Below the pieces are notes generated by a model. The model was given only the letters and a program-made list of their open reading frames with translations. It made no database searches and was not told the DNA's origin. The position numbers and the translations under genes are program-made. Shown here in pieces: positions 5,621-40,688 of a stretch of DNA of 64,000 nucleotides. Numbering within the stretch: position 1 is the stretch's first letter; the number at the start of each line of letters is the position of its first letter. Source of the DNA: Epithemia pelagica (lineage: Eukaryota; Protista; Bacillariophyta); contig OX337237.1 in assembly GCA_946965045.2 (NCBI GenBank), positions 186,001 through 250,000 of the forward strand, written 5' to 3'.

Positions 5621-5769
5621 TAGTTCACACCAAAACTCCAGACTTGTGAGTCTTTTGGACTGATGGAACTATTATAGGTTTTGAAGTGAACGTCCTCGCT
5701 GTCCATCTACAACCTGCTTTATGCTGCGGCAAATTGCGACAAGAGTGTAATTCACACCAAAACTCCAGA
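5621..5769. promoter_or_regulatory. Paired 24-bp upstream motif TGTARTTCACACCAAAACTCCAGA (5621-5642, 5746-5769)
   Basis: The same motif recurs upstream of the Kelch genes at 10150, 10276, 40003, 40067, 52504, 52564 and 57271. Regulatory function is inferred. Confidence 0.55.
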
Positions 5770-6661: not shown

Positions 6662-6673
6662 ATCTACTCGTGT

Positions 6674-6800
6674 GGATAAGGACCTGAAAACTTTCGACAA
6701 AATGAGATAAACCTCCTAGAGCATGGTTGGTGCATGACACGGCGCTGTTTCTAGGCAGGTTTTTGTGTTTCATAGTCCGAAACAAAATAGAGCAGGCATA
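6674..6800. repeat. Dispersed repeat R1, copy 2 (at the tandem-duplication junction)
   Basis: ggataaggacctg...tttctaggcaggttttgtgtttcatagtccg. Confidence 0.75.
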
Positions 6801-9972: not shown

Positions 9973-10719
9973 GTTGGTGGGTGAGGAGGAGAATTTGCCG
10001 TTCTTGTTCGTCGATGAATCCGCGGTGGATGGAATCGAATCCTTGTTGTCGCCAATCAATAGAGAGGAACTCATCTTGAATGATTTTTGTGATCCAAACG
10101 ACACGCTATGCCTTATTTAGGTTTTCAAGCGAACGCCTCGACTCTGTCCAGTTCACACCAAAACTCCAGACTTGTGAGTCTTTTGGACTGATGGAACTAT
10201 TATAGGTTTTGAAGTGAACGTCCTCGCTGTCCAGCCTTATGATGCGGCATATTGCCTGCAAGGTCGCGACAAGAGTGTAATTCACACCAAAACTCCAGAC
10301 GTGAGTCAGCATGGCGTTCTGTCGCATTGCTATACTCCACTGGAAGTATTGGACTGCGGATCTTATATAGACAAGGAACCAAGATGTTGCTTCTTCAAAG
10401 TCGATCGAGGTATACATCTCATATATATAGGTACGAAGACCTACATTATAACCAAATGAACCAAACAGAGAGCCGATCGTACTTAATACCTTTCTATCCA
10501 GCTGGAATCGTATGCACATCACAGTGCATAGAGAGAGAGATTGCAGGAAGGTTCTGGTTCTACCCCGGATTGTGTCGCCCAATGGTATCTATACTAGAGG
10601 CCCGTGGGATAGGAAACAGGGATCATGGAGAGACACCGAGCGAGTAGTCGCTGCTCCCAACACATTTGGGAAACTGCGCACCACATGGATCTCTCCTTAT
10701 GTTGCCTGCTGTCGGCTAC

Positions 10720-13458
10720 TTACTCCAACGAGTCTGTCAAGGACGACGACAATGAGGCGGTTTGCGAATTGTCCGAGGTGGTCCTGGATGGTTTGCTCTT
10801 TCCTCCCCACGAATACAATGACTTTGAAGGAGTGACACTTGGATCCGCATCCAGTGTGGATCGTCGTGCTACGTCTTCTTTCGTTGGGGAACCCTCGCTC
10901 TTCTTGTTGTGGTGTGCGACGGCAACAGTGTGGGTGTGACGATGATGCAACCGTGTCAATTCATGTTCCTTCGTTTGTCCGGTCCTTGCACCCACATCAT
11001 TGTCAACTGCACCACCAATGTCATTGTTTGTTTCCGTACTACCATGAAAGGACGACGACCCAAACGAGGATTGCGTCCGCATCAAGGGTTGCGAGGTGGC
11101 TTCTCGTCGCGCGCGGGCATAGTCGCCAATCTGCCACAAACAAACCATGGCAATGGCAAAAAAGACATTGAGGGAGGCCAAACTCCACGCCATTTGAAAT
11201 CCCAGTTCATTCAAGACGGAAAAGACCAAGGGTGGTAACCAGGCCAGGACGTTGGCGGCCAACATCATGAGTCCCATCAATTCGGCCCGAGCGGGAACGG
11301 ACGAATCGTCATGGTCATGGTGGTGGTGGTCCGCGGCCAAGCCCTCTTGTTTGTCCTCATCCTCGCCACTGCTTTTATGCGAAAGAACTGCTGCATCCAA
11401 GGACTGTTTTGCTTGGTCGTCTTTTACCAAACCTGCTTCTGCCTCCGCTGCCGTCGTCGTGGTTGCTGGCGTCGTTGTCGTTGTGGGCATGAGATTCATA
11501 TAAATGGTATTGTCCACGGGTGGGAGCCATCCAAGCAGCATGCCCCACAAGACAAAAAATACCGTGGTGGGCCATCCCTGATGTTGCGGTCCCGTCAAGA
11601 CGCACGAGGCGGCCGTGGTGACAACAATGCAAAGCGCATTGCAAATCAAGGCCGACACGACGGGACTTTGAAAGTGGACCGACAAGAATCCACCGAGCAA
11701 ACTACCGGGAATGCCCGTCAAGAGGGAAATGAAAAAGACGAGACCAATTTGAGTGGCCGACATTTGCAAGACTTCTTTGAGATAGGTTGTCACAATGGCG
11801 GCAAAGCCCGAAACCTGTATTTGTAAGATAATAAGAAGAAAGTATAATAATAGAGTGCCACCCACATCAAAACAGGCAGCAACCGAAACACAACACAGCC
11901 ACATCCAAAAAATGACAATTGTCAGAGAAAGAGAAGAGAGAGAAAGCAATGAGAACGAAAGAAGGGGGAGGAACAAGCGAGAGAAATAAAGAAACTGCTC
12001 CGCACACACGAACTGCAGGCCCCGACAACGACACCGGTTTATATTACTCCATGCATCCGTTCCCAGATTTGTGTAATAGTGTATCCGCTCGTCTTGTCGT
12101 CCTTCTGTGGAGTACACAATGGTACGTACCGCGGCCTCCGAACACATGCGAGCACAGATGGTCCAACACAGGGCCCGATGGGACGCGACAATGCGACGAC
12201 TGGTTTGATAGACCTGGACAAAGCCCCGGGTCCACAAATTTTTGGTACGACGGGCCGCGGGTCGAGGACGAAAATACAACTGCCAGGCCAGGGCAAAACA
12301 GGGCCAGGATACGAGGAGGGTCAAGACTTGACTGATGCGCGCCGTTTGAACATTGTTCGACAAGGGAGACGACGACGAATCGTCATCATTGTTGATGTCA
12401 TTTGGTGAGTCATTTGGTTCGTCCTCAATGGTCGTTGCGGTCCTGGTTGTGGATGTGCCATGATGATTCCACAGGGCCGACACACCAAAGACAGAGAGTA
12501 AAAAGACGAGCATGCTGATATATTGAACGACATTGTATCCGGAATTGTACTGCGCCTTGAGGTGAGGATCGTGCGTGAGTTCCGTCAAGTAGGCATAGGC
12601 CGCGGCCGCATGCACGTTAAACAAGACGCTCGTGACAATTTGCAAGCCGGCGACCCACATCCACGTGTGTGGACCAATCGTGGCTTCGACGCCTTTTAAC
12701 AGTGCCATGGCCCAGGCCGAGACCAACCCGACGGCGCGACGATAGGGCGTGTGATCGACCACGGCCCCCACAAAGGGCAAACACAGGGATCCCAGCAAAC
12801 CGGCGACAATGGCAATGTTGGTAATCAATGAGGAGGGACGAAATCCGTGAATGCGACAGACCGCGTTGGGTGAAGTATCGTCGTTGCCATTGTACACGGG
12901 AGATGAGTCGTTGGGATTGGAAGTGTCACTCGTACCACCACTGCAGTGCAGGGCCGCCGCGGCTTGGGCCAGTTCGAGCAAGGCCGGTGCCAAAACCATG
13001 GAACTCATCAAGACATGGCCTCGGGCATAATAATCCAAGGTCAAGCCCCACACTTCGGGCGGATTCTTCTTGTTGGGCGTATGGTTGTGGTTGGATGTGA
13101 CCAAAGACTCGTCGTCTTGTTGTTCTTCTTCTTCGTGTTGTGGGAGTGGAGAAGAGGATGCGGATGCTGCTGGTCCTGGTCGACGTTGTTGTGTGGGGGA
13201 CCACCACTCCCTCCAAGACCAGGAAGAAGATGATGATGAAAGTCGTGGTGGTAGTTCTTCCTCATCGACAAACAATTCGTCGTCGTGCTCGTCTTTTTGG
13301 AAGGATGGATTGTCATGGTAGTGATGCTTCGTTGGGTGGTGGTCGTCGTTCCCACGAGTGGATAATGTGGTGCTCGTGGCCAATTGTGAAGCATCCTGTG
13401 GTGCGGCCAAAGAAGAAGACGCATGATTGGAACGATTTCGTTCCAGCCAGGGCAACAT
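10720..13458 (-). CDS. MFS transporter, Atg22/UMF1-like; probable intron 11815-12129
   Basis: About 12 hydrophobic segments; motifs LCLPFVGAVVDHTPYRR and AYAYLTELT. Removing the 315-nt gtacgt..atacag segment joins SEAA to VSGFAAIVTTYLKEVL. Confidence 0.8.
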   Translation of the reverse strand: MLPWLERNRSNHASSSLAAPQDASQLATSTTLSTRGNDDHHPTKHHYHDNPSFQKDEHDDELFVDEEELPPRLSSSSSSWSWREWWSPTQQRRPGPAASASSSPLPQHEEEEQQDDESLVTSNHNHTPNKKNPPEVWGLTLDYYARGHVLMSSMVLAPALLELAQAAAALHCSGGTSDTSNPNDSSPVYNGNDDTSPNAVCRIHGFRPSSLITNIAIVAGLLGSLCLPFVGAVVDHTPYRRAVGLVSAWAMALLKGVEATIGPHTWMWVAGLQIVTSVLFNVHAAAAYAYLTELTHDPHLKAQYNSGYNVVQYISMLVFLLSVFGVSALWNHHGTSTTRTATTIEDEPNDSPNDINNDDDSSSSPLSNNVQTARISQVLTLLVSWPCFALAWQLYFRPRPAARRTKNLWTRGFVQVYQTSRRIVASHRALCWTICARMCSEAAVRTIVYSTEGRQDERIHYYTNLGTDAWSNINRCRCRGLQFVCAEQFLYFSRLFLPLLSFSLLSLSSLSLTIVIFWMWLCCVSVAACFDVGGTLLLYFLLIILQIQVSGFAAIVTTYLKEVLQMSATQIGLVFFISLLTGIPGSLLGGFLSVHFQSPVVSALICNALCIVVTTAASCVLTGPQHQGWPTTVFFVLWGMLLGWLPPVDNTIYMNLMPTTTTTPATTTTAAEAEAGLVKDDQAKQSLDAAVLSHKSSGEDEDKQEGLAADHHHHDHDDSSVPARAELMGLMMLAANVLAWLPPLVFSVLNELGFQMAWSLASLNVFFAIAMVCLWQIGDYARARREATSQPLMRTQSSFGSSSFHGSTETNNDIGGAVDNDVGARTGQTKEHELTRLHHRHTHTVAVAHHNKKSEGSPTKEDVARRSTLDADPSVTPSKSLYSWGGKSKPSRTTSDNSQTASLSSSLTDSLE

Positions 13459-13988
13459 GATGAGAATATTGTATGTACAAACAAAAGGGACGGTTTCTGC
13501 TGGAGAGAACCTTGTTCCTCCTCGTTTCCTCTTCTTCTTTGACTAGTATATACAAAGTGCAAATGGATGCCAATCCACGTAACCAGGCAACCGAGAGGCG
13601 AACACACAAAGACACAACACAAAAGAAACGGTCCACCCACAAGAGACGAAAAAAGACCCCCCAAAACGTGTGATGTGCGAACGACCAAGTCCTAATACTC
13701 CTCAGAGGTCAAACGGGGAAGGAAAGCTTCCAAAATTTTTGGAGCAACAACTTTGCCAATGAACCTCCGCTGGGGAGACGGATGGGTGTGGCAGTCATTC
13801 GATTGGACAGGTCCCTGCCAGTCGCGTCGGTAGCCCAACCAAACACAGGGATATGGGCCAACGAGAGTTTCTTAGACAAAAGTCCGATGACAAGAGTTAC
13901 TCCTACCTATAGCTATGTATCGGTGGACTGTGGACTTGCACTGCAGCGATTGCTACCAAAAAAACGATTTGGTTGTCGCCAAACGGCT

Positions 13989-14230
13989 CGACACGATGGA
14001 CATGGACCGCCACCGTGTCCATCATTGTTGCCATCTTTCTCATGGCATTTTGGTTGTCGCTACTAGTAGGTAGAGCCATTGATCTATACACATGGATCGA
14101 CAGCCACTGCCTTGACACGATGGACATGGACCGCCACCGTGTTCATCATTGGTTCCATCTCCCCATGGCATTTTGGTTGTCGCTACTAGTAGAGCCATAA
14201 TAGATAGGCACATGGATGGACAGCCAACGA
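13989..14230. repeat. Two tandem ~125-bp units
   Basis: gacacgatggacatggaccgccaccgtgt...catggcattttggttgtcgctactagtag occurs twice. Confidence 0.8.
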
Positions 14231-14749
14231 CTTTCTCATCCATCTTGGCCCATCTCCTGACATGCGCAGTCTCGAAAGGACCAGTACTACGCACGTTCGT
14301 TTCGTATTGTCCTCTACTAGAATTCAGGCAACCCAGCTGTAGTTCTCCAACTCTAGAGGAGAGAAGGAAGAGTGTTCGATTGGTAACGATTGCCTTTGAA
14401 AGGTACATTGCGAGGATCTTTCAAATAGCAGGCATAGCAGGGATAGTGTATTCTTTGGATTGGTAGCGACTACCGCTGGGAGTGGATAGGCACCAAGGAG
14501 ACTAGATATAGAGGAGTATGTTTTAAGAAAAGAGCTTGCATGTTTTGAGTGATGTACCAACTGCTGACTACCGATCAAGACACTGGTCACCTTCCAGTGG
14601 TGGATATGAGAAAGGAACTCTTTGGTGGCCTACCTAGCAATTTTCAATCTACCTTCCAAAGTAGTTGCAGAGAGGTTGAAGAGGGATCTAGGATCTATCC
14701 TTTGCCCTCTCTCTCTCTCTCTCTCGCCAGTCGTCATTGTTGTCTTTGG

Positions 14750-15065
14750 TGTTCTCCCCGAATGATTGTTCTCATTCGAATCATCTTTTTCGATAGCTTT
14801 TATGGGTCGAAGCCTTCTCGGATTGTGCGGCTGGCACATCTGAGCAGCATTGGATGACTATCATTCCTGATGCGGTCATGAATCCATAGTCCAAAGCTCA
14901 TTCTGTCGTCAGTCGTCCTTGTCGTCTTTTGTGTTCTTCCCAAACCATGGTTCTCATTCGAGCCCTTGTCTGTGGGCAGAAAGCTTCTCGGATTGTGCGG
15001 CTGACACATCTGAGCAGCATTGGATGACTGTCATTCATGATGCCGTCATGGATCGTAGCTTTGCG
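14750..15065. repeat. Two tandem ~170-bp units
   Basis: ttctcggattgtgcggctg.cacatctgagcagcattggatgact.tcatt occurs twice. Confidence 0.8.
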
Positions 15066-15280
15066 TCAATGTTGATTACACAGTACTCGCCTCGCGAGAT
15101 CCACATTGTGGATCTACGAACTCTGCCTAATAAGGTATTGATGGAGGGAGGATCTCGCATCTCCATCTCGCATCTCGCATCTTTGCTGCCATCGCGCGTA
15201 TATCGCTCTTGTCATCCTTTATCGCCATGGGCCCTTCGCGTTCGTCTCGGATTCCATATCTAGTACAGGTTTTCTACAGT

Positions 15281-15514
15281 TGTTGGAAGTTCCCCGTTGC
15301 CGCCCGGTGCATTCGGAACCTGGGGGGAAACTCCACGTGCGTACGAGTATGGACACACGTCACCATACGACACTTCCCAACTGACGCCCCTACTGCGTCA
15401 GCACATACACACCCATAGCGTAACATGACCATACCCTTATAATTTACTCAATCCCCTTTTACGAAACTAGCTAGTTGGCCCTTTTAATCGGCAGTGACCA
15501 CGGTTAAAACAACA
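15281..15514 (+). mobile_element. Candidate solo LTR (234 bp)
   Basis: Termini TGTTG...CAACA and a TATA-like ttataa. Flanks are ACAGT and (g)ACAGT, i.e. a 5-bp TSD offset by one base. Confidence 0.45.
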
Positions 15515-15926
15515 GACAGTTCGACGGTGCGAATGCGAACGAGCAGTCTCTTTTGTTTCTGTTTTACGTTTTACTTTTTACTTTCTTGACGATACTGGGG
15601 CCGTCTGTCTTTGCTCCCCCAAGTTCTAAAATTCTTTTGTTTTTTGTTTTGTACCATCGTCTTTTTGTAGTTAAACTTCAAACTCCCTAGTTTGTGGCTG
15701 CAACAACAACCTGTAAGATTCCCAGTGGGTGTCTCTGGTGAGGTGAAAAGTGACATGAATGAGGCACCATGAAAGAGACTGGATCATCGAAAGCCATGTT
15801 GATTACATGAGTGAGATGAGCAATAGCAAGAACAAACGATATTTGATAAAATGATTTAGAGAGTATATGCTGCTACTACGTCCACATGAGAGTCGGTCTC
15901 TAGCTTCCATCCATTCACTAGCTAGG

Positions 15927-16595
15927 CTAAAGCCTTTGAAGCCAAATGTCCATTTTTAGGTCTCGATCAAGATGATCACTCTCACTTTCTCGAAACATGC
16001 CAGTCTGTCGTGGCTGAATGCGAGGTCTCAGTCGAACAGATGGCAACTTGGACAGCTTGTGCAAGGCAACCAACTCTTCTTCTTCTTCGTCATCATCAAC
16101 CTGAAGACCAGTTTCGTCTTCCTCAAGATCCGGTAATAACCTCAAACCAGCTTCTGGTACGCATTCTTCATGGCCAATGTAGTGAATACCCCTCAGTGAC
16201 GAGGAAAAGCTAGTCTCACAACTTCGGGGAGACTTGTTAGGTCGTCTCGGGAGTGCGCACTTGGCTTGAATAGGCGCAACTTGAACGCCACAATTGTATG
16301 CTGCAGGATGCATTTGTTCCCACTGTCTTGACCGCTTGGACTCGCTTCGACTTGTTCTTCTCAGTCGGTCGGATCTTGTGACGGGGAAATTCTCGTTGCG
16401 ATGTGGCGGTGTCAAGTCCGATACTTCAACCAGAGAGAAATCAATCGAAGATATCATCGTGTCAAGGACATGTGTCGACCCACTTTTCTCAACCGCTGCA
16501 CGTTGGACCGTGGCTTCCCCATGGTCGCAACTCTTTGTTTGTTGGTTTCCTTGGGAGGAGGACTCTGTTGTGGAACGGATAGGACCCATCGGCAT
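15927..16595 (-). CDS. Hypothetical S/E/R-rich protein
   Basis: 235-aa ORF with low-complexity composition. No recognisable domain. Confidence 0.45.
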   Translation of the reverse strand: MPMGPIRSTTESSSQGNQQTKSCDHGEATVQRAAVEKSGSTHVLDTMISSIDFSLVEVSDLTPPHRNENFPVTRSDRLRRTSRSESKRSRQWEQMHPAAYNCGVQVAPIQAKCALPRRPNKSPRSCETSFSSSLRGIHYIGHEECVPEAGLRLLPDLEEDETGLQVDDDEEEEELVALHKLSKLPSVRLRPRIQPRQTGMFRESESDHLDRDLKMDIWLQRL

Positions 16596-17933
16596 CTTTC
16601 TCGCAACTAGGGAGACGCAGTTGTATGAGAGCAAATGATCAAATTATGGAGTGACACACGAATGTTGGTGTCAAGAGACCCGCGTGAGAATTTTGGTGGG
16701 ACGGAAGGACGGGTACATTTTGTCCTATAGTTCTTGTCCTGGTTTGTGACAGGATCTGGAAGTGCGACCGCGTGACTTATGCGAATTCCAGAGGGGCAAT
16801 TTCTTTAGATCCCAATCTCCAAATTCTTTCGGATGATGCGAAAGAATTTGGAGATTTGTATAGGCTAAATCCGTATGCTCGCGGCGCAGGTATTCTTTCC
16901 GGGAAACTTAGCTTACGGAGAGCACGTGCTTGATCGCCTAAACAATCATCGAAGGATAAAATTTTGCTGCATGTATTCAATCTTGGAAGAGAAGCCTGTT
17001 TGGTCTTGTAAGACATGGAGCGACCTTTCAGTTTTATGGAGTGAGAGTTGGCATCGAGAAAATATCCAAGGGAATAGTTCTAAGTTCTAAGCCAAAATGA
17101 CAGATGACACCTCGACGATGCATCTTCCATTGCTCTAGCTGCTTCTTCTCAAAAACAGTGTATGACGCATGTCGGAAATCTGAAATGAGAATAAGCATAA
17201 TATTATAGTAAAGAAGTGTTATTGCTTATTGCTTGTTGCTTCTACTTTCTACCTTCTACATTCTACACCTCTAGCTTCTGGCTTTTGGCTTTTGTCAGCT
17301 CTACGGAGTATTCATTAGGAGCTACTCCTAGGAGTTTGGAGTATTATTATTATTTGTCCTTCTTATAACCTATAATATAGGAGTATCATCTTTTATCTTT
17401 TATGCTCCTTCATCCTTCACCCTTCACCCTTCATAGTTCACAGGAGTACTTCATACATACTTGATAACAAAAAATAAAAACAACCTGTGGACACTCATTT
17501 CGCCTTTCCTTCTTGCTTTGTAATCGAGCACCTCCACACCAGGGTTGTGAAGTACGCACACTCACACCTTGTACTTGACTACTAGTCCTTAAGTACACTA
17601 AAACTAGTAGCTGTTACTTTACTCTTATTACTTTAAGTACGTCTAATGAAAGCATGTACTTTTCTTGAAATACTTACAAGATTAGTCGTCTGTGCTGATT
17701 AATTAACGTACTTAACTTAAGATAAGTAAGTACAGCAATCTAACCAGACTTACTTGACTTAGCAAAAGTATCTGTTGCCGATACTGTGCTGGTACTTTAA
17801 TATCAACAAGTACCACATCATGAGAGTTTCCCTCGCCTTACTTACTCCAAGTAAGTACCTTGCTGTCTAACCCAAAGTACTTAATTTATAACATTAAGTA
17901 CGTACTTTCAAGTAATCAAAGTACCTACTTCAC

Positions 17934-18508
17934 CAAGGTTGCTACTACGTCACGTCACGGGCCACAACCGTGACGTGACGCCGTCAAAAAGTGACGGGAA
18001 TATGTTCCCGTCAGGTGTTTCCGTCACTTTCGTCAATTTTGGGATATTGATAAGACAAAAGGGATGTATGATAGAAATATGATGTTTTGACTGTATGTTT
18101 CATGGTCCCTGATGTCTGTAAATGGTGCCTGAAGTGGACGGAAGCTCCACTTCGTCTCCTTTTCCAAGGATGAATCCCCAAAGTTTGTCCTTGTCCCGTC
18201 ACAGTAGTGATTCTGACATCCAACCACGGTAAGTCAACATCGATCATGCACACATAATAGTTATGACCATGCATGATCATCAATGGTTGATTGTTGCTCA
18301 TTCCTTGGATCACTTTGGATGCCATTTTTGTGCGTTTCTCGACGTATCTGTTTGCCTACAAAAGATCCACAAAAGATTTTTTTGTTTCCCGTCACTTTTT
18401 TTCATTCCCGTCATTCGTCACAGCCTTATGGCCTGACGTGACGTCGTCAATTTTACTTCACGTCACGTGACGTGCGTCAATTGTGACGTCGTCACAGTAG
18501 CATCCTTG
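17934..18508. mobile_element. 575-bp MITE nested in the hAT left end (P-superfamily-like termini)
   Basis: 13-bp TIR CAAGG(T/A)TGCTACT with 1 mismatch and a perfect 7-bp TSD ACTTCAC (17927-17933 / 18509-18515). About 20 subterminal TGACG/CGTCA motifs. Confidence 0.8.
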
Positions 18509-18670
18509 ACTTCACGCATCAATTTATCACTTACCTGTTACAGTCTGTTACATACTACTGCTCTCCAAGGTACAAGTGCAGCGTTCAGTGCAGTGCATAG
18601 TGCATCCTGTGTTCCTTGCCAAATTCCAATCCCATTTTCCAATCCAAGTAATGAGACATCCCCATTCACC

Positions 18671-20398
18671 ATGTCGATGGATTCTCTCATAGAGGACAAT
18701 TCTCTTCTGCAATTCACATCAACCTGTCACATTGAGTGGTCTCTGTCATGCTGTGACTCATATTCTCTTTTCATTGCGGACAGTATTACTTCATGCATTC
18801 TGGCTCCGCACGAGGAACAATTACATGCGGTTGTTACTGCCTCTGCCTCCTGGCTGAACCGTAATCAGCATTCGATAAAACTTCATACTCTCTCGGAATG
18901 TCAAGCAAGTCACCATTGTATTATACCCAGATTTTCTTTCGAACAACTCCTTTTTCAAGTTAGCTCCCTTATTCTCCAATGGCTCAATGGAACAGACAAA
19001 CACAACCTTATTTCCATCACATCACACGACGAAACAACCGATCTTTATCTTGAAGTAAAATGCACACCGAAGTTCTCAATCTCCCCATGTATGGGTTGTT
19101 CCCAGTGCACCTCCTTTGTCATTGACGAATTCAAGGAATATCCCGACGACTCTTTGCTGAGTATTGTTCTTGCATGGATACAGCGCAATCAAGCCCAATT
19201 CGTTGTCACTGATACCCTAACAGGTGTCTCCACCGTTCCCAACTCAATTGAAACGGTAATGGAAATTTTACTGAATTATATATCGGAAAAGATAACTCAA
19301 TTACCGACTCCACCAGACCCCCTAAGCACACCACCCGTGTCCATCCAAGATGTATCCAAAAAAGCCTCTGACGATTCCACCACATCCTCATTATCTCAAT
19401 CCACAAACTCTGTGCAGAATACGAAAACATCTTCTCCTAAAAAGCTTAGTCCATCCCGCCACAAGTACCAAACTCGGAAACAGAATGCTTTACTTTCGAG
19501 AGAAATCATTCTTGGGTCAAAATCTCGCAACAAAGTACAATACAATGATGGGAAAGGACCACGTGGGTTCATGCATGGCGACCCATTCAAAATATCCCCA
19601 AGTCGCATTACATGCCCGAATTTACCACTCCGGCCATCCGCAACAACTATCGCAGATCGAGAAGCTTTCCTTGACGAACTACAAGCCTTCCACAACGTGC
19701 TTAAAAGTTCTGGACTCCATTCTCCTCGTGATGCCTGGGAAGAATGGATGGACATGGTGGGAGGTGATGACAAACTAGCGGACAAGGCCTTCATGTGTCT
19801 CATAATCATTCTTATGAGCTCGAGTACAACAGACAGTCAATTAGCGGCATTCATTCCCAAAATATTCTCTGCCGGTGTTACCTCCGCTGATGGTGTTCTC
19901 GAAGTGGTAGATCGCATTGGAATTGACCCCTTTTGTGCACTAATCTCTCCAGTTGGCCGTTTCCATCAAAATGCCGAAAGGATTGTCCATTCGGCATCGT
20001 ACTTTGTCACCAGATATAACGGCAGAATCCCCAACGACATATCCATACGAGAGTTGACCTCCTTGTTTGGAATTGGATACAAGACAGCACAAATTGTTGT
20101 ATCCACTGCATTTGACCGAATAGATGGCATCCCCTCTGACGTCCATGTTATGCGTTGGTGCGAGGCACTGAAATGGACACCGCCACTTTCAAACGACGGT
20201 CTACTCTGTTCGAAGTGCATAGAACAATGGCTGCCTCCATCAAAATGGGGAATAATCAATCCCCTGTTTGGTGGAATTGGTCAGCTGATACAAAATCCGG
20301 AAAAACGTCCGCAATTGCTAGCATTATTGGACGAGAACGGCTCTGACATGCTACAATCTACGATTCGCCGGATTCTAAAAGCTTACGGTAAATACTAA
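18671..20398 (+). CDS. Endonuclease III (Nth)-like HhH-GPD DNA glycosylase/AP lyase with a long N-terminal extension and no Fe-S motif
   Basis: FMCLIIILMSSSTTD, ISPVGRFHQNAERI, HhH LTSLFGIGYKTA, IPSDVHV and WLPPSKWGIINPLFGGIGQ match the Nth pattern. First ATG after the MITE is at 18671. Confidence 0.85.
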   Translation: MSMDSLIEDNSLLQFTSTCHIEWSLSCCDSYSLFIADSITSCILAPHEEQLHAVVTASASWLNRNQHSIKLHTLSECQASHHCIIPRFSFEQLLFQVSSLILQWLNGTDKHNLISITSHDETTDLYLEVKCTPKFSISPCMGCSQCTSFVIDEFKEYPDDSLLSIVLAWIQRNQAQFVVTDTLTGVSTVPNSIETVMEILLNYISEKITQLPTPPDPLSTPPVSIQDVSKKASDDSTTSSLSQSTNSVQNTKTSSPKKLSPSRHKYQTRKQNALLSREIILGSKSRNKVQYNDGKGPRGFMHGDPFKISPSRITCPNLPLRPSATTIADREAFLDELQAFHNVLKSSGLHSPRDAWEEWMDMVGGDDKLADKAFMCLIIILMSSSTTDSQLAAFIPKIFSAGVTSADGVLEVVDRIGIDPFCALISPVGRFHQNAERIVHSASYFVTRYNGRIPNDISIRELTSLFGIGYKTAQIVVSTAFDRIDGIPSDVHVMRWCEALKWTPPLSNDGLLCSKCIEQWLPPSKWGIINPLFGGIGQLIQNPEKRPQLLALLDENGSDMLQSTIRRILKAYGKY

Positions 20399-20444
20399 TT
20401 TGGTTGAATGTTCATTAAAATACTACTTTAGTTCTTCGCTGGTG

Positions 20445-21387
20445 TCAATGGTTTTCCTCGTCGTCTTCATTGGTCTCCTCATCGTCCTCATTGGAGTCGT
20501 CGTCTCCCACCTCCTCTTCTTCTTCCTCCTCATTGGCATCCTGGAACTCCTCTTCTTCCTCTTCATCCTCGTTCTCATCATGCTCTGAATTTTCATCTTT
20601 ATCGTTATCTGACAAGGCATCAAGCAATCTACGAGAGAAGTTGCTCTCTTTTTCCATATTGTCCGATTGTTCATCGCTCCGATCTGATTGAGTCGATCGT
20701 TGTTTGTTCGCTTTCTTCTTCTTCTGTTTAGGAGACCGCCTCAATTCTTCGCTTCCGGATGACCTTTTTCTCGGTGGTGGTGGATTTGTCTTCTTTGTCG
20801 TTGACTTGGAACTGGATGTTGTTCTAATTTTGGACTGCTCGGCCTTCTTCTGACTCGAAGTTGTTGGTGTTTGGTTAGCCTTCCTCTTCTTCTTTGACAC
20901 AGATTCAGATCCTGCCGTATCGTCCTTTTTTTGGCTCATCGCTTTTCTCTTTCGTTCCTCGACTGCTTCTTTCCTTGATCTTTCTAGTGATTCAAGACGG
21001 TCCATTTCTTCCTGTAGATGAACTGTGATGGCTTCATCTGTGTCGATGTCTTCTTCGACATCACTTTCCTCATTGTGATCACTGACATCAGACAAGTCCA
21101 ATGATACTGGCTGTATGTCGTCTGCTGGCATCGGTACTGTGTCGTCGTTGTTGTCGTCTCCCAAGTCTGGATAGTACTCGTATACAGGTTCCGGTGTGCT
21201 ACTTGCGAGAATATCGGTCGGCGGATTTTTCTTTGCGTTGAAATCTTCCAATTCTTTAGTCGCTTCCTTCAACAACATGTTCCTTAGTCTGTGCCAAACC
21301 AATTGGGATGCGATACACGGCACAATTGCGAGGATCACAGAACATGACAGTGACCCCAAGTACATCGTACTTCTTAGCCTGCCACAC
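20445..21387 (-). pseudogene. hAT transposase 3' remnant: (D)VWQAKKYDVLGVTVMFCDP, then a deletion/frameshift into a K/D/E-rich tail
   Basis: Removing the copia plus one TSD gives ATVCHD-VWQAKKYDVLGVT, the hAT D-x-W...Y.GVT motif. The rest of the catalytic core and the dimerisation domain are absent. Confidence 0.75.
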
Positions 21388-21392
21388 ATCAT

Positions 21393-22150
21393 TGTTAGGA
21401 TTCTCACCGAAAACTAGGTGGCGAAACCTACAACTCATCGAATGATGCTAGTATTTTATGGCATCCGATGACATTTTCCTAAAAGTGAGAAAAGAATGTC
21501 GGCATGCTCGCGAAACTATAAATTTGGCCACGGCATGCTCGCAGTGCACGCGTTATCGGCGACCGCTCGGATATTAACTATGGCCCAACACGTGCGCGCC
21601 CAAAACTATCAAGTGCGCGCCTCTACTATCCGAGTACGCGCATCCACGATTCGACCTAACGGTCTATGTAATCAAAGCACGAATCACGATCACGCGAGAC
21701 CATATCTCTGTTCCCACAATTCCAAGAATGCAAACAGCAACGCGCCCAGGACAAGACTTATACCACGACAAAGCAAGAGCTGTTGCATCCCATACATGTT
21801 ATCCATCACCCTATACATTCAATATACACCAATGCCGGTCCACTCCAACCAGTGAGGACCTATCACACCAGATCCATGGCCGTATGCAAGAGCCAGGACC
21901 TCGGCACCGTCAACCACCTTAGTTAGTAATCGTCTCACAATCATTAATATCACCATTTTAACACTCATCTTAAGACTAACCTCTTATCAGTGGACCGACT
22001 GCCCCCACCCACGGCGGACTTCGACTTGCAACTCTTCTCTGACCCGTGGAGGATTGTTGTATCGGTTGGTGATTCGATTGTCGGCTCAGCGAGCCTTTTA
22101 CCTATCCTAACTATCTGTCTAACCCCTGTTGAATCGAGAGAAGTTTATCA
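21393..22150 (+). repeat. Copia LTR (758 bp), left copy
   Basis: TGTTAGG...TTATCA, matching 29211-29968. Flanked by ATCAT on both sides. Confidence 0.92.
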
Positions 22151-22950
22151 ATCATGGCATACAGTGGCGAAAGGGATTTCCTGTCGGCAAACCTTTTTGT
22201 AGTGTTGCCGGACACGATAGGAAAGCTTGGACACTGTTCTGATGAAATCTTGATACGAAGCAACACGCATGGATGTTACTTCGCGACGACTGATCACCTC
22301 AGGCCTGGATTCACGAAGAAGATTCGCATTTTTGATAGCAAAGTCGATCATCTTGCGGAACTCTGGCCTCTCCACAATAGAAGCGGGTGGGCAACAGTCG
22401 TTGACGCACTGGTATATGTGTTGCTGCATTTGTTGTCGAATGTTTCTCTTCGTGATCATTCCAGATCCATCGCCACGATACATCGTCATTGTCGTTTGCG
22501 TCGGACTAGGTTGTTCTGGTTCGTTCGGATCGTCCTTTGTTCCTGGGATGACGAAGTCTTTGTGCTTTCCGTCAGTATGCTGTTTTATATTGGAGGGCTT
22601 GCCGGTCAGCATGACAACTGCATTAGACAATGGAGTCTCGGGGTCCTTCATACACAACAGGCATAGAACACATCGCTTGGCAATGAAGGAAAACGGAGTT
22701 TTGTAGTCGGCCTTGTTAGGAAACTTCTTTGCTGCTGCGGCTTGTTCTTTTTGGGCAGCCTTGAAAGCTTCGTTGATGCGTTGGAAACCTTTATACATGG
22801 TCAAATTCTGTGGATCGTGAGAACTCACAAAGGCCGAGAACTGTACCCAGTCAATGTGGACAGCAAATTTCCAAAGGGGCGACACATTGTGATGTCCAAA
22901 GTGGTCGGAAGGTAGCTCTTGACATTTGGGAAGAATCTCCTTTTCTTGTA
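22151..22950 (-). pseudogene. 800-bp duplicate of the hAT transposase segment 29969-30768
   Basis: Identical ORF translations at offset 7818. Identity ends at ttttcttgta (22950 / 30768). Confidence 0.9.
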
Positions 22951-23534
22951 CTACTTCCACACCATCTGGATCGTCAACTCGACGACGAATCCGCTACCTA
23001 CCCCGACTACTCGTCTCGACGAGTACGTCTCCTTTGTTCACGAGATCCATCTCTGCCAGGATTTCCGTGCGACTATCTACCCTCTCTTCACTCAACACGT
23101 GAACCACTTGTTGGAAGACGACGACGTTGAAGAACTAGCCACTACAGTGACCGATTCTGCATCTCGTCTTCAGTACCGAGCCGAAAGTGACCAAGAATAA
23201 GTAACTTTACGTAGTTTCTACACCAAACCAGACACAAGACCGAGTTCCGTCCAAGACTTAAACTCAACGCACATCCGGGTACCCTTGGTCGCACAACACG
23301 CCACACATTCCCGTCAAATCGCGAAAATTCGGCGAAAATTTGTTGAAACTCGGCGAAAATTTGTCGGAATCAACGGAAATTTCCAGGAGTCGCGCATCAC
23401 AACACACATCCGGGTATCACATACGTGGTACATACGTGGCACACGTGGTACATCCGGGTTCACATCACATCACACATTAAATAAACCACATCACACCGCA
23501 CATTAAATAAACATCGAACCAACCAAATAACATC

Positions 23535-26500
23535 ATGGAAGCGACACCTCCCAAGACACCGTTTACTCCTCCTGAGGACAAGTCAAGTCATATAACCGAC
23601 CAAGATCTCTTCGACCATATAACTAAAGGCATCTTTGGTTGTAATGACGAACGAGCCCAGTCACTTCAAAAGTGGATGCGACATCATGGTTTTGAACATA
23701 TCCTTCATGTCCTCGACCATGTTGCAACCGATCCCGAGGAGACACTCAAGGATCTCATGCAATACAAGGTTGGAAAACAAGTCAACGACCTACAGACAAG
23801 TACAAGGTTACAACTCAAACTAATGGCATATTGGTTATTACAACAACGGCAACTCCAACATGGAAAACTGCCCCGTGCTACATGGATAAACCTCACCAGG
23901 GACCAATATGACGATTGGAGGATCAACACCGACTTTACCAAGTCTGGTATGAACCAAGACCCAGTTTCTCCTCTGAAATCACCTGCACACTCCGTATCAT
24001 CCCGATCTCCCACTACATCCTCTACAACATCTCAATCCATGTTAGATCTCTCTGCTTTCAAGAAAGGAACCAAAAGAGATGCAACAGCATTTGAATCATT
24101 CAAAGACGAACGATACTTTGATTCGTTTTGGCGTGTATTCAAATCAACTGCGAAAGCACAAGGATTGTCGAATGTTCTTGATTTCGATTACAAGGTACCC
24201 AAGGATGACGAATGCGCAGAGTTACTTTTCCGAGAACAACAAGTCTTTCTCTATTCTGTACTTGTACGTATTATCCAAACCGACCAAGGAAGAGCATATG
24301 TTCGAGAACATGAACATGATGAAGATGCAAGAGCCGTCTTGAAGAAACTCCATGTTCTACACACTGAATCTGATCTAGCTAAGCGAGAAGTGTTACGCCT
24401 AACAAGCTACATTTCGAATCTTCGACTGGATGACTCTTGGCGTGGTACAACTCGTCAGTTTCTCCTACATTTTCAAGAACAGCTACGACTTCTGGATAAC
24501 CTTGTACCACTGTCGGATCGTATCCATGACCATACAAGGATGACCTTCCTTATGCAAGCTGTTGAAAAGGTACCTGATTTAAGACGAGTCAAGATCTTGG
24601 ATAACGTTGTCAACACAAAATCTGGAGCCAAGTCTCTCTGTTATCAATCATATTTTCGCCTGCTTCTTGATGCTGCTTTTGACCATGACCAAGCTACCCG
24701 AACTTCTGCGTCTAACCGCCGTCGTCATGTAAAGCAACATGAATTTCAGTTGGATGAACCCTTTGAACCAGTGGAGCCCCCTGACTACCAGATCAACAAC
24801 ACGAATATCCAATCCGAAAAGTCCCCAACTTCGTCAAAAATCAGCCTTCCAAGAGATGTATGGTTTAAACTCTCTGAAGAGGATCGGCAAATCATTGTCG
24901 ATTTCAATAAATCCGTCCAAGATTCCCCGACAACTCCACGCAAGGTCCAAACACATTCTCTTGACATTGATCCTGAACCGGACCCTGATCCTGATGCCAA
25001 CAACATTGGTGATACCCATCAAGATGCACCAGAACAAGATCCATTCGATATATCCTCTGATCCGGTTACCCAGTTCGTACACCAGGCTATTGCATCGACA
25101 GATATCAATCATCCAGCATCTGACCTCAGCAACATCTTGTCAACTTCTACGACAAAGTCAAGTCCTAAAGTCAAGTTCAAGTCTTCTGCTGATCACAAGC
25201 AAAAGGTTCATATGTCACGATATCTATTCTCCCGCAAATCCACCTTTTCTGGTAATCAACTCATTGATCGAGGTGCCAATGGAGGCCTTGCAGGATCTGA
25301 CATGCGTATCCTTGCCAAAACCGGACGTCATATTACCATCGTAGGTATTGACAATCATGAATTGACTGGCCTTCCAGTTGTTACCTGTGCTGCCAAGTTT
25401 GATACAAGTGATGGACCCATTATTGGTATCTTCAATGAGTATGCCCACTATGGAAAGGGTTTATCTATCCATGCCCCAGCGCAATTTGAACATTTCGGCC
25501 TATCTGTCGACGAACGATCCGTAAAGGTTGATGGCAAACAACGCATTACTACCCTTGATGGACGCGCATTGCCCTTACGAATCAAGGATGGCCTTGCATA
25601 CATTCAATCTCTGGGAATCCCTTCTGATGACGATATGGATAAATATCCGCATATTGTGTTCACTTCACCCCATATCTGGGATCCTTCTGTACTTGACCAT
25701 ACCCATCCAGACCCCCATCAAGACCCTGCACCGAACTGGACATCTGTGGAGACTGATGGTAGTATGGAAACGTACCCCTATGACCAATATGGGGAGTATA
25801 CCGATCGCGTTGTATGCACTTTGAATCTCCTCCTTGATCTCCCATATGATCATGGCCCCGATACGCCTTCCTTCTTTTCCATCTATGCTGATCAAGATGG
25901 CAACGACCCCACACTTCATGCGTCTGTCCACAAACTCTACAAGGAACAATACGACTGGAAGAAATTTCGCCCTTTCTTTGGGTGGCAATCGGAAGACGTA
26001 ATCGCCGATACGTTCAAGCATACAACTCGTCATGGACACATTTCCTTTGACCAGGATACCTTGAAGAAACACTTTAAGGCCCGGAATCCTATCCTTAACC
26101 TCCCACGACGGCATGAACCCGTTGCCACTGATTCCATCTTCTCCGACACCCCGGCTGTTAACCATGGTGGCAAGATTGCTCAGATTTTTGTTGGTCGTGA
26201 TACTTTGGTTACTGACATTTATGGTATCAAGTCTACCAAGCAATTTGTCAATACCCTCCAGGATAACATTCGTACACGTGGTGTCATGGAGACTTTGATC
26301 AGTGATGGTGGTTCGTCACTTATTTCCCACAAGGTCAAGGATATTCTTCGCACCCTTCTGATTGGTGAATACCGTTCCGAGCCCTATCATCAACACCAGA
26401 ACAAAGCTGAGAACCGCTACCAGACCGTTAAGCGTATGACCAACGCTATCATGAATGCCTCTGGTTGCCCTGCTTCTGCATGGTTACTTTGTTTGGAATA

Positions 26501-29216
26501 TGTGTGTGACCTCCTCAATCACACTTCCTCTCCCACCCACTCTGGCCGCACCCCTCTTGAGGCTCTTACCGGTACCCCACCCGACATTACCCATCTCCTT
26601 TTCTTTCCTTTCTGGGATGAGGTCTACTATCGTGTCGACCCTTCTGAACCTACCTCCGGTTCTTACCCTTCGTCTCCCGACGAGAAGCTTGGCCACTGGG
26701 TTGGTTTTGCCCACAATGTTGGTGATGCCTTTACTTGGAAGATCCTCACTGCCGACAACGTCATCATCTACCGTTCCGCTGTCCGTCGCGTTGCCTCCAC
26801 TACCCCCAACCTTCGTGTGGATATCTCTTCAGGGGAGGAGTCGCCGCATAAACCCACTGACAAGCAAGGTGACACTGTCTTTATTCGCAGCAGAAGTGAA
26901 GACCCATCCACACCTATGCCAACAATTGACTATGACGATTTAGTTGGACGCACATTCCTTTGTGACACTGAAGAGAATGGGGAGCGCCACCGAGCACGAG
27001 TAATCAAACGAGTTGTCGACCTGGAACAAGATGCAACCAAACAAGAAGATCGACTCAAATACATCTTTCGCAAGTCTAACTCCAATGTTGATGAGATGAT
27101 CTCCTACAACCAGCTCATGGAATACATTGAAAGGGATAATCAGGCCCAAACGACAGGGGATAGTCTCTTCCGATTCAGAGACGTTATTGCACACCAAGGA
27201 CCTTTGAACTCAAGCGACCCAGACTATAAAGGGAGTAAATATAATGTCCTTGTTGATTGGGAGACTGGGGAGACGACATACGAACCTCTATCTCTTATTG
27301 CAAATGATGACCCCATCACAGTCGCCATCTATGCCAAGAAAAATGGTTTGCTGGATCTACCTGGATGGAAACATCTCAAGCGATACGTCAAGACAAGCAA
27401 AAGACTCATTCGAGCAGCTAAACAATCCAGGATCAAACAAGTTCGTCGCTCTATCAAGTACAAGTTTGGTTTCCAAGTACCTCGCACCTATGAAGAAGCA
27501 GTGGAACTAGACAAGCAGTTTGGGAACACGAAATGGCAAGACGCAACAGAATTGGAACTCTCACAGATCCAATCGTATAACACTTTCAAGAACCATGGAA
27601 AAGCCAAGTTCATTAATGGGAAATTGGCCAATGCACCAGAAGGATATCATAAGATAAGAGTACATCTGGTCTTTGATGTCAAGCATGACGGAAGGCACAA
27701 GGCACGACTTGTCGCAGATGGACATCTCACCAAGGAACCCGTTGAGACCATCTATTCAGGGGTTGTCTCCATTCGCAACCTTCGCATTGCCATATTTCTT
27801 GGAACCATGAACGACATGGAAATATGGGGAGCAGATATTGGGAACGCATATCTAGAAGCATTGACAGGAGAGAAGATTTTCATCATTGCAGGACCAGAGT
27901 TCAAGGAGTTAGAAGGACATATCTTGATCATCTACAAGGCATTATATGGTCTCAAATCCTCAGGTGCTCGCTGGCATGACAAACTGTTTGATGTTCTCAT
28001 TGATATGGGATTTTCTCCAAGCAAGGCTGACCCTGATATTTGGATGAAGAAGGCTCCTGGAGAAGACTGTTATGAATATATCGCTGTATATGTTGATGAC
28101 TTAGCTATCGTTGCCATGGACCCTGAAGCTGTCTGCAAGATCTTTACAGAAAAATACAACTTCAAACTCAAAGGAGTCGGACCTATCGAGTATCATTTGG
28201 GGTGTCGTTATACCAAAGATCCAGACGGTACACTTGTGTCTGACCCACGAAGGTACATCGAGAAGATGATGGATACCTATGAACGATTGTTCAATGAGAA
28301 ACCCAAGAAAGCAAAGCCGCCAGTCATTGCTAACGATCATCCTGAACTCGATGACTCTGAGCTCTTAGATGAAGAAGGGACCCAGCATTTCCAGACTCTT
28401 ATTGGACAACTGCAATGGCTAATTACCATTGGCCGTTTTGATGTCTTTCCTGCTACCATGACTTTATCAAGGTTCAGAGCTGCTCCAAGGATTGGTCATT
28501 TGAAGCGAGCTAAGCGCATCTATGGATACCTCATGTCATTTCCTGATGGGTCTATCAGATTCCGTACTGGGGAGCCAGATTTATCAGCTTTACCTATCCA
28601 AGAATACGATTGGAGTCGTACTGTATACATGGACGCCAAGGAACGTATCCCTGAGGACTGTCCAACCCCACTTGGGCGTTTTGTGACAACTATACATTAT
28701 GTCGACGCAAATCTCATGCATGATATTGTTACTGGGAAAGCAGTTACAGCCATCCTGCATTTTGTAAATGGTACACCCGTGGACTGGTACAGTAAGCGAC
28801 AAGCCACAGTGGAAACAGCCACGTATGGATCTGAATTTGTTGCCGCAAGGACTGCAGTTGATCAGATCACGGAGCTACGCCTTACACTCCGATACTTGGG
28901 AGTCCCTCTGCGAGAGAAGAGTTACATGTTTGGAGATAACCGCTCTGTCGTTATCAATAGCACCACACCACACTCAATCATCTCCAAGAGGCACCATCTC
29001 CTATCCTATCACCGAGTCCGTGAAGCTATCGCTGCAAAGTACGTCGCATTCTACTGGAAAGATGGAAAGACAAACCCAGCTGATATCCTCAGTAAACATT
29101 GGGAATTCGCCGCAGTTTGGCCCATGCTCAGATCTTTGTTATTCTGGAGAGGAAAAATCCAGGAAAGTGATGAGGGAATTGACAATCCTCATTCGACGAA
29201 TTGTGGGGAGTGTTAG
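23535..29216 (+). CDS. gag-pol: Copia Gag-Pol polyprotein, 1893 aa, uninterrupted
   Basis: PR (LIDRGANGG), IN (ISDGG, QNKAENRYQTVK), RT (KARLVADG, WGADIGNAYL, YVDD) and RNase H (TATYGSEFVAA, FGDN), in copia order. Confidence 0.95.
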   Translation: MEATPPKTPFTPPEDKSSHITDQDLFDHITKGIFGCNDERAQSLQKWMRHHGFEHILHVLDHVATDPEETLKDLMQYKVGKQVNDLQTSTRLQLKLMAYWLLQQRQLQHGKLPRATWINLTRDQYDDWRINTDFTKSGMNQDPVSPLKSPAHSVSSRSPTTSSTTSQSMLDLSAFKKGTKRDATAFESFKDERYFDSFWRVFKSTAKAQGLSNVLDFDYKVPKDDECAELLFREQQVFLYSVLVRIIQTDQGRAYVREHEHDEDARAVLKKLHVLHTESDLAKREVLRLTSYISNLRLDDSWRGTTRQFLLHFQEQLRLLDNLVPLSDRIHDHTRMTFLMQAVEKVPDLRRVKILDNVVNTKSGAKSLCYQSYFRLLLDAAFDHDQATRTSASNRRRHVKQHEFQLDEPFEPVEPPDYQINNTNIQSEKSPTSSKISLPRDVWFKLSEEDRQIIVDFNKSVQDSPTTPRKVQTHSLDIDPEPDPDPDANNIGDTHQDAPEQDPFDISSDPVTQFVHQAIASTDINHPASDLSNILSTSTTKSSPKVKFKSSADHKQKVHMSRYLFSRKSTFSGNQLIDRGANGGLAGSDMRILAKTGRHITIVGIDNHELTGLPVVTCAAKFDTSDGPIIGIFNEYAHYGKGLSIHAPAQFEHFGLSVDERSVKVDGKQRITTLDGRALPLRIKDGLAYIQSLGIPSDDDMDKYPHIVFTSPHIWDPSVLDHTHPDPHQDPAPNWTSVETDGSMETYPYDQYGEYTDRVVCTLNLLLDLPYDHGPDTPSFFSIYADQDGNDPTLHASVHKLYKEQYDWKKFRPFFGWQSEDVIADTFKHTTRHGHISFDQDTLKKHFKARNPILNLPRRHEPVATDSIFSDTPAVNHGGKIAQIFVGRDTLVTDIYGIKSTKQFVNTLQDNIRTRGVMETLISDGGSSLISHKVKDILRTLLIGEYRSEPYHQHQNKAENRYQTVKRMTNAIMNASGCPASAWLLCLEYVCDLLNHTSSPTHSGRTPLEALTGTPPDITHLLFFPFWDEVYYRVDPSEPTSGSYPSSPDEKLGHWVGFAHNVGDAFTWKILTADNVIIYRSAVRRVASTTPNLRVDISSGEESPHKPTDKQGDTVFIRSRSEDPSTPMPTIDYDDLVGRTFLCDTEENGERHRARVIKRVVDLEQDATKQEDRLKYIFRKSNSNVDEMISYNQLMEYIERDNQAQTTGDSLFRFRDVIAHQGPLNSSDPDYKGSKYNVLVDWETGETTYEPLSLIANDDPITVAIYAKKNGLLDLPGWKHLKRYVKTSKRLIRAAKQSRIKQVRRSIKYKFGFQVPRTYEEAVELDKQFGNTKWQDATELELSQIQSYNTFKNHGKAKFINGKLANAPEGYHKIRVHLVFDVKHDGRHKARLVADGHLTKEPVETIYSGVVSIRNLRIAIFLGTMNDMEIWGADIGNAYLEALTGEKIFIIAGPEFKELEGHILIIYKALYGLKSSGARWHDKLFDVLIDMGFSPSKADPDIWMKKAPGEDCYEYIAVYVDDLAIVAMDPEAVCKIFTEKYNFKLKGVGPIEYHLGCRYTKDPDGTLVSDPRRYIEKMMDTYERLFNEKPKKAKPPVIANDHPELDDSELLDEEGTQHFQTLIGQLQWLITIGRFDVFPATMTLSRFRAAPRIGHLKRAKRIYGYLMSFPDGSIRFRTGEPDLSALPIQEYDWSRTVYMDAKERIPEDCPTPLGRFVTTIHYVDANLMHDIVTGKAVTAILHFVNGTPVDWYSKRQATVETATYGSEFVAARTAVDQITELRLTLRYLGVPLREKSYMFGDNRSVVINSTTPHSIISKRHHLLSYHRVREAIAAKYVAFYWKDGKTNPADILSKHWEFAAVWPMLRSLLFWRGKIQESDEGIDNPHSTNCGEC

Positions 29217-40627: not shown

Positions 40628-40688
40628 GTGCCTAGAAACGATGTACGAGGTAGAATGAATAAGAGGAATAACACATTCGATTGAGTGG

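Follow-up and report, generated by a model that had tools for sequence, protein, structure and literature searches.

Transposons are known to carry writers and erasers of epigenetic marks, among them DNA methyltransferases, SET-domain proteins, TET/JBP dioxygenases and VANC. In two of these cases, the fungal DNA transposons that carry TET/JBP genes (Kyakuja-Dileera-Zisupton and others) and the VANDAL elements of Arabidopsis with their VANC protein, a cut-and-paste element encodes an extra protein beside its transposase, and this protein is thought, or has been shown, to undo the DNA-methylation silencing of the element's own copies (PMC12730594, PMC5735166). The stretch of DNA described here, a window of 64,000 nucleotides from the diatom Epithemia pelagica (contig OX337237.1 of assembly GCA_946965045.2, positions 186,001 to 250,000 of the forward strand), holds a hAT-superfamily DNA transposon with an extra gene for a predicted DNA glycosylase related to NTHL1 and endonuclease III. 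As in the TET/JBP and VANC class, this gene is encoded inside the element and co-inherited with the transposase; in contrast to that class, its product is a glycosylase and not an oxidase or a non-enzymatic DNA-binding protein, and both the transposon superfamily and the host are different. Positions given below without a locus name refer to the window, and residues to the window's glycosylase.

The enzymes closest to this protein are NTHL1 and endonuclease III, with which it shares the fold, the lysine of the helix-hairpin-helix (HhH) and, as in NTHL1, an aspartate 19 residues further on. It differs from both in that the cysteine motif for the 4Fe-4S cluster is missing and two C-terminal helices are found instead, in an N-terminal extension of ~350 amino acids (aa) with a duplicated domain, and in being encoded by a transposon rather than at a host repair locus. 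Yeast Ntg1 and bacterial MutYX (PDB 8uuc) are likewise enzymes of the Nth/MutY family that lost the Fe-S centre; these, however, are host repair genes without the N-terminal module, and neither is a closer match than NTHL1. Ntg1 has no Fe-S cluster and is nonetheless an active glycosylase and apurinic/apyrimidinic (AP) lyase (PMC4666366).

A functional analogy is offered by DEMETER (DME) and ROS1, which are bifunctional HhH-GPD enzymes with the Lys and the Asp and an Nth-like ancestry, and which counter silencing by excising 5-methylcytosine (5mC). In them the Fe-S cluster is retained, the glycosylase domain is split and accompanied by further conserved domains, and the genes belong to the host, whereas the glycosylase domain of the transposon protein is contiguous and is followed by no further C-terminal domain. 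Reports of the DML (DME/ROS1) glycosylases are confined to plants and green algae (PMC9861306), and a recent preprint describes a plant transposon protein that recruits host ROS1-type glycosylases (10.64898/2026.08.24.746577). From MBD4 the protein differs in having no MBD match in Pfam and in possessing the lyase Lys, MBD4 being monofunctional. A preliminary description of the locus, made from the letters before any database search, had pointed to kinship with ROS1/DEMETER and MBD4; at the level of the superfamily this is correct, while at closer range a profile of the family recovers NTHL1 and endonuclease III only.

The carrier has in common with the described hAT elements (Hermes, Ac, hobo) an 8-bp target-site duplication (TSD), short terminal inverted repeats (TIRs) starting with CAG, subterminal hexamers and a C-terminal dimerisation block of the kind that contains the catalytic Glu. 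Unlike these classical elements, which encode the transposase alone, it has a second conserved open reading frame (ORF) and a transposase about twice as long. Literature searches gave no report of a DNA glycosylase of the Nth type as a conserved transposon gene. Two things are new, then: a hAT element in which a conserved glycosylase is the accessory gene, and an NTHL1-type enzyme that has no cluster and carries a novel N-terminal domain; a cluster-less and active Nth homologue was already known in Ntg1.

The carrier transposon and its two genes

With hardly any room for doubt, the glycosylase gene accompanies the transposase gene as accessory gene in a hAT DNA transposon of the autonomous type. 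The cargo status claimed for it in the preliminary description is thereby upheld, with the hAT element, and not the neighbouring copia retrotransposon, as the carrier. The order within the element is TIR, glycosylase gene, a transposase gene pointing toward the glycosylase, and TIR (Table 1), and the intact relatives of the window's element measure 6.7–7.2 kb and have the same two genes.

The unit was found again at other loci. Positions 9436–16261 of locus L001 are ~98% identical to the window's element, and the flanks are unrelated on both sides. L001 and three further loci have perfect 8-bp TSDs of their own (L001, GTTACCAG; L002, ATATGGAC; L003, CTCAAAAC; L004, CTTGTGAT) together with related terminal repeats, and all five TSDs, the window's included, have a T at position 2 and an A at position 7. 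The TIR of the window is identical in L001 (apart from one mismatch in the right arm) and in L002. In these three elements the hexamer AAGTAC/GTACTT occurs 13–16 times in each terminal 400 bp and fewer than 0.35 times per 400 bp in the interior (0.34 in the window's element), and the subterminal hexamers are presumed to be binding sites for the transposase. The termini of L003 and L004 carry AAGTCA/TGACTT instead, with 6–24 copies per end. Across L001–L004, hexamer and TIR co-vary by subfamily, AAGTAC going with CAGGGTTGTGAAGT and AAGTCA with CAGGGTGTGGAAGT, a pattern to be expected of transposases that are each specific for their own ends; CpG occurs in neither hexamer. The interval from the left TIR to the ATG of the glycosylase (17540–18670) is ~0.57 kb longer in the window than in L001 and L002, and this additional sequence, in which there are short tandem repeats, finds no match in the other loci.

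The transposase gene (~1280 aa) is broken in the window copy, having suffered a single large deletion in its interior (~2 kb in comparison with L001) and the insertion of one retrotransposon; the pieces that remain have no stops. Intact transposases of 1227–1363 aa are found at the same position in L001–L007 and L012. All four of the transposases that were tested match the Pfam domain Dimer_Tnp_hAT (PF05699), with 25.8–28.8 bits against a cut-off of 21.4, and a profile built from eight of them matches the Hermes transposase (E 7e-5) at the block with the catalytic Glu. Residues D301, D367 and E857 are invariant in eight transposases; E857 aligns with the SER.FS motif of Hermes, and no sequence match spans the two Asp blocks. 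A BED finger was not detected in the transposases with Pfam.

A word search returned relatives of the glycosylase with 98% (P0001), 61% (P0002) and 32% identity (P0003 and P0004), whereas the catalytic domain alone as the query gave 4 family fragments only. The loci of P0001–P0004 belong to one long-read assembly, and at all four a gene for 1227–1284 aa lies directly downstream and points toward the glycosylase. The two-gene layout was found in nine elements including that of the window, among them L005, L006, L007 and the sediment-metagenome contig L012, and terminal repeats of their own were shown for seven of the other eight. The complete element in L012 (1471–8687), in which the transposase has 1363 aa and the glycosylase, with its shorter N-terminus, 436 aa, means that the glycosylase family exists beyond one assembly. 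In L006 (892–13818), two elements of different subfamilies adjoin, and their glycosylases (543 aa and 605 aa, 37% identical) are each accompanied by a transposase gene. A TIR-like sequence was seen ~730 bp upstream of the glycosylase gene in two short environmental contigs, and a tblastn search of the short environmental contigs L008 and L009 with the transposases gave no match. At least 55 distinct protein variants (summed over 90% clusters), most of them full length, are present in the one long-read assembly. A related hAT element from another assembly (L011, 5950–13014) has the 8-bp TSD AGCACCAC and a 905-aa transposase that is 38% identical in the core; lacking a glycosylase gene, it serves as a natural negative for comparison.

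The glycosylase ORF is continuous in every copy, with no spliced model needed, and in eight elements (the window, with its broken transposase, not being among them) both ORFs are free of stops. The pairwise identities of glycosylase and transposase drop together, from 99%/98% to ~33%/33% (r = 0.97, 28 pairs), as would be expected had the gene been acquired once, long ago, and then been inherited jointly with the transposase. The ratio of nonsynonymous to synonymous substitution rates (dN/dS) of the window's glycosylase is 0.30 against L001, where there are few differences, and 0.09 against L002, where synonymous sites are near saturation; by domain it is 0.18 for the N-terminal domain, 0.08 for the basic segment ahead of the catalytic domain and 0.05 for HhH-GPD. 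A ratio near 1, which the preliminary description had named as an outcome that would speak against a function, is far from the 0.09–0.30 obtained for the whole gene. Taken together, these comparisons show a gene that, judged from the protein identities, the hAT lineage would have acquired once and long ago, and has co-inherited with its transposase, under purifying selection, down to ~33% identity.

The glycosylase protein

The reading frame of the glycosylase stays open upstream of its ATG as far as 18467. The catalytic centre had been recognised in the preliminary description from the strings GIGYK (aa 467–471) and SDVHV (aa 489–493), in which Lys471 and Asp490 have the 19-residue spacing of NTH1, and the alignments bear this out. 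In a single-sequence phmmer search, aa 373–545 align to human NTHL1 (PDB 7rds/7rdt, E 5e-17) with no gap between the two catalytic residues, and Lys471 and Asp490 fall on the HhH Lys of NTHL1 and on the Asp of its VDTHV, with the spacing of 19 in both proteins. Bacterial endonuclease III aligns with the same residues (phmmer, E 1e-10 to 4e-9), the alignment to the E. coli enzyme needing a one-residue gap, as its Lys-Asp spacing is 18. When the family profile was compared with all PDB sequences, NTHL1 was found at 2e-19 and endonuclease III was recovered as well.

Structure prediction of both regions, proposed in the preliminary description as a check, gave an NTHL1-like C-terminal domain and an N-terminal fold without a match in the PDB or BFVD. 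AlphaFold2, run on the family alignment, produced a folded N-terminus, a disordered linker and a helical C-terminal domain, with a mean predicted local distance difference test score (pLDDT) of 80. Foldseek placed NTHL1 and endonuclease III first with this model (7rdt, 7rds, 1p59 and 2abk, probability 1.00; for 7rdt, the template-modelling (TM) score on the target was 0.68), and the further matches after these Nth types included MutY, OGG1, MagIII and the cluster-less MutYX. An alignment of the 23 family members has 37 invariant columns, K471, D490, H492 and a block around aa 371–388 among them. The absence of the Fe-S cluster motif, likewise noted in the preliminary description, extends from the window protein to its 22 relatives: none has C-x6-C-x2-C-x5-C, the tails in the family contain 0–1 Cys, and the 39-residue tail behind the conserved GQL of the window protein contains none. 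Two C-terminal helices (546–556 and 559–571) are modelled in place of the Fe-S loop. By these features of its sequence the protein represents, like Ntg1, a side branch of the Nth/NTHL1 family without the Fe-S cluster that canonical membership would call for.

The invariant catalytic Lys and Asp, together with the purifying selection, make it reasonable to regard the protein, as had been proposed from the start, as a probably active bifunctional enzyme, and a working DNA glycosylase/AP beta-lyase of the NTHL1/endonuclease III type is the likely prediction. The loss of the cluster is no argument against activity, because Ntg1 is active without one.

The preliminary description had also called the N-terminus novel, and no relatives outside the family came to light with HMMER, Pfam or Foldseek. 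Only 16 proteins came out of an exhaustive HMMER search of 1.84 billion representatives with aa 1–372, and nearly all of these have 436–639 aa, which is the size of family members. Pfam at permissive thresholds gave only scattered, inconsistent and sub-threshold matches for six N-terminal domains, and Foldseek with the N-terminal model found no match in the PDB or BFVD (best E 0.09 and 0.16, TM ~0.1–0.2). The domain is, as far as these sequence and model searches reach, specific to the glycosylase family. Modelled alone with AlphaFold2, it reached a pLDDT of 87 and a predicted TM score of 0.67. Its two halves are homologous to each other (hhalign probability 97%, E 1e-10), and each is built of a beta-hairpin, a pair of helices that carry an invariant Trp (W61 and W169, respectively), and a strand.

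A Cys/His-containing region had been reported for this part of the protein. The three strings quoted are present (SCCDSY at aa 26, CQASHHC at aa 77 and CMGCSQC at aa 140), whereas their residues are mostly not conserved: C27, C28, C77, C140 and C143 are each a Cys in 3–7 of the 13–21 members aligned at the column, and C19, H81/C83, C131 and C146 are semi-conserved only, C19 and C131 occupying equivalent positions of the two repeats. A metal-binding finger is unlikely because the quoted cysteines are mostly not conserved, and the zinc- or metal-finger reading of these motifs was therefore dropped. The N-terminus is read as a duplicated alpha/beta module.

The S/T/K linker of the preliminary description was found at about aa 213–265, where it is predicted to be disordered; it aligns poorly, and its length varies among the relatives. 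In the basic segment that follows, T268, R269, Y291 and G303 are nearly invariant, and a helix (269–281) is modelled with a pLDDT of ~80.

Candidate purposes of the gene

In the mechanism that is proposed, the HhH-GPD domain would flip a pyrimidine out of the helix, Asp490 would activate Lys471, which would form the Schiff base, and beta-elimination would nick the strand, leaving a gap to be filled by the base-excision repair of the host. The C-terminal helical hairpin that replaces the 4Fe-4S loop would make the enzyme independent of the Fe-S assembly of the host, and the duplicated N-terminal module, the disordered linker and the basic segment are putative means of targeting to the DNA or chromatin of the element or to the transposase. 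The base removed from the element's own copies may be 5mC or a derivative, in which case repair would restore unmethylated C and so counter silencing. This candidate anti-silencing purpose ranks first among the purposes considered, yet it is a tentative one, more doubtful than probable. If the purpose is read loosely, as an action on pyrimidines of the element, modified or damaged, from which the element benefits, the whole chain comes near to an even proposition and falls just short of it. The boldest version is an unlikely one, namely that a hAT lineage outside plants would have turned an NTH1-type repair enzyme of a host into a self-targeted glycosylase for 5mC or a derivative, a candidate demethylase convergent with DEMETER/ROS1; the same low expectation attaches to the accompanying proposal that this conversion would have involved the loss of the Fe-S cluster and the gain of a new duplicated targeting domain.

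A point of contact with methylation comes from the substitutions between two young copies, that of the window and L001, of which 18/72 are CpG transitions, ~4–6 times the share of CpG positions. This excess suggests that copies of the element are CG-methylated and are still decaying at CpG.

Several observations weigh against an anti-silencing enzyme that matters to its element. The ratio of observed to expected CpG (CpG o/e) is 0.69–0.88 in the glycosylase-bearing hAT copies, 0.79 in the nested copia and 0.75–1.03 in the flanks, i.e., in the hAT copies it is not above that of copia and is below that of most flanks; together with the frequent CpG transitions, this low ratio means that no escape from methylation-linked decay is visible. 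The composition data, neutral to slightly negative in their bearing, do not support an effective constitutive demethylation and are compatible with a conditional action. In the comparison of the family profile with all PDB sequences, no chain of ROS1, DME or MBD4 was found at E ≤ 0.1, and with only Nth-type enzymes recovered, nothing in the sequence favours 5mC over oxidised pyrimidines. The Pfam HhH-GPD model (PF00730) gives 18.6 bits for the window protein, below its cut-off of 26.2; it matches 16 of the 23 relatives, with P0004 above the cut-off, and the fold is certain despite the low score because of the PDB and structure comparisons. Finally, the related element in L011 has no trace of a glycosylase gene in the 3.3 kb after its transposase, and this transposase belongs to a cluster (P0096) of 205 near-identical protein variants; as such a relative is abundant without the gene, the glycosylase is not needed for the proliferation of the wider hAT clade.

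Of the other explanations the best placed, itself rather improbable, is that the enzyme serves the integrity of the element's sequence, retaining the ancestral Nth specificity (oxidised pyrimidines, perhaps T:G/U:G) and guarding copies that lie in methylated, mutation-prone chromatin from decay. NTHL1 and endonuclease III are by a wide margin the most similar proteins, Foldseek also lists 1kea, a thymine-DNA glycosylase of the Nth family, and both ORFs are intact in 8/8 elements inspected, all of which would suit such a guardian. A protection from deamination is, however, not visible in the CpG transitions (18/72) or in a CpG o/e no better than that of copia, and hosts would encode an NTH1 of their own, which presumably already handles oxidised bases.

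A link to transposition itself has a smaller chance still. The glycosylase/lyase would here recruit or prime the base-excision or gap repair of the host at donor or target sites, with the N-terminal module binding the transposase. The two genes are strictly linked and convergent and have diverged in step, and the transposases linked to a glycosylase have long terminal extensions (1227–1363 aa in all) in comparison with the 905 aa of the glycosylase-less relative, as would be expected of partners. That relative is nonetheless abundant, the extra tail of the transposase is a poorly conserved acidic stretch of low complexity, and no precedent was given by the literature searches; to our knowledge, the hAT systems that have been studied transpose without any glycosylase-type enzyme.

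It is very improbable that the gene is a mere passenger, i.e., a captured host NTH1-like gene that is decaying or neutral and has no function for the element. DNA transposons are known to capture fragments of host genes, and the sub-threshold Pfam score and the lost Fe-S loop could be taken for signs of decay. The ORF, however, is intact in every element examined despite saturated synonymous sites, dN/dS is 0.05–0.18 by domain, the 37 columns invariant in 23 sequences include both catalytic residues, and the added N-terminal domain is conserved and, in the models, folds confidently. The last alternative, that the ORF is no hAT cargo at all and belongs to an ordinary host repair gene beside transposons or to the adjacent copia, from whose long terminal repeat (LTR) it is ~1 kb away, has practically no probability left, since it lies outside the LTR pair of copia and its 5-bp TSD and inside a TIR/TSD-bounded hAT unit that recurs with different flanks.

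If the glycosylase does act on the element's own pyrimidines, a mobile element would have retained a base-excision-type enzyme to its own advantage, whatever the base removed. An NTHL1-type domain can evidently be maintained with no Fe-S cluster and joined to an N-terminal module of a new type. Should the substrate prove to be 5mC or a derivative, the family would provide the first element-encoded excision demethylase and a second, independent origin of the ROS1/DME strategy, and the counter-silencing by transposons in this host group would be directly testable with methylomes. For comparative structural work, the family offers a compact (~220 aa), cluster-free, predicted bifunctional glycosylase domain.

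Feature coordinates and the surroundings of the element

Table 1. Features of the hAT element and of the retrotransposon nested in it (window positions).
Feature	Position	Strand	Remarks
Left TSD	17532–17539	.	8 bp, CTCCACAC; same 8 bp directly outside both termini
Whole hAT-superfamily DNA transposon	17540–31416	+	13,877 bp through the nested retroelement
Left TIR	17540–17555	+	16 bp, CAGGGTTGTGAAGTAC; perfect reverse complement of 31401–31416
Left subterminal AAGTAC/GTACTT array	17540–17939	.	15 copies in 400 bp
Glycosylase ORF	18671 (ATG)–20398 (stop)	+	575 aa, without internal stop
N-terminal domain (aa 8–212)	18692–19306	+	Tandem duplication of a ~100-aa alpha/beta module
S/T/K/P-rich linker (aa 213–265)	19307–19465	+	Predicted disordered, pLDDT < 50
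Basic segment preceding the catalytic domain (aa 266–352)	19466–19726	+	Conserved; dN/dS 0.08
HhH-GPD (Nth/NTHL1-type) glycosylase/lyase domain (aa 353–575)	19727–20395	+	Lys471 codon 20081–20083, Asp490 codon 20138–20140
hAT transposase gene	20445–30871	-	Convergent with the glycosylase; broken in the window copy
Nested Ty1/copia-type LTR retrotransposon	21393–29968	+	Inside the hAT element
Copia LTRs	21393–22150, 29211–29968		758 bp, 100% identical, TG..CA ends, 5-bp TSD ATCAT
Copia polyprotein ORF	23535–29216	+	1893 aa, RVT_2 2.7e-24, weak rve match
Right subterminal hexamer array	31017–31416	.	13 copies in the last 400 bp
Right TIR	31401–31416	.	Perfect 16-bp inverted repeat
Right TSD	31417–31424	.	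8 bp, CTCCACAC

The identity of its two LTRs indicates that the nested copia is a very recent arrival. A pair of identical direct repeats of 1558 bp had been considered as its LTRs and was set aside, the true LTRs being those with the TG..CA ends and the other 800 bp duplicated hAT sequence: in a self-BLAST, the 800 bp behind the 5′ LTR (22151–22950) exactly repeat the hAT sequence behind the 3′ LTR (29969–30768), possibly a rearrangement or an artefact of the assembly.

Elsewhere in the window, a second Ty1/copia-type element (43348–48821, minus strand) has RVT_2, gag-pre-integrase and retroviral SH3-like domains and a CCHC zinc knuckle. Kelch-repeat paralogues form a cluster at 2900–10100, 38300–43200 and 51300–62850, inside segmental repeats of 72–85% identity, and a Kelch gene adjoins the element in L004 too. 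Genes for HMG-box proteins are found close to the element in the window (32949–34754, plus strand) as well as in L001 (7531–9288); because the HMG box (27% identity) is all that they have in common, the neighbourhood is regarded as a coincidence.

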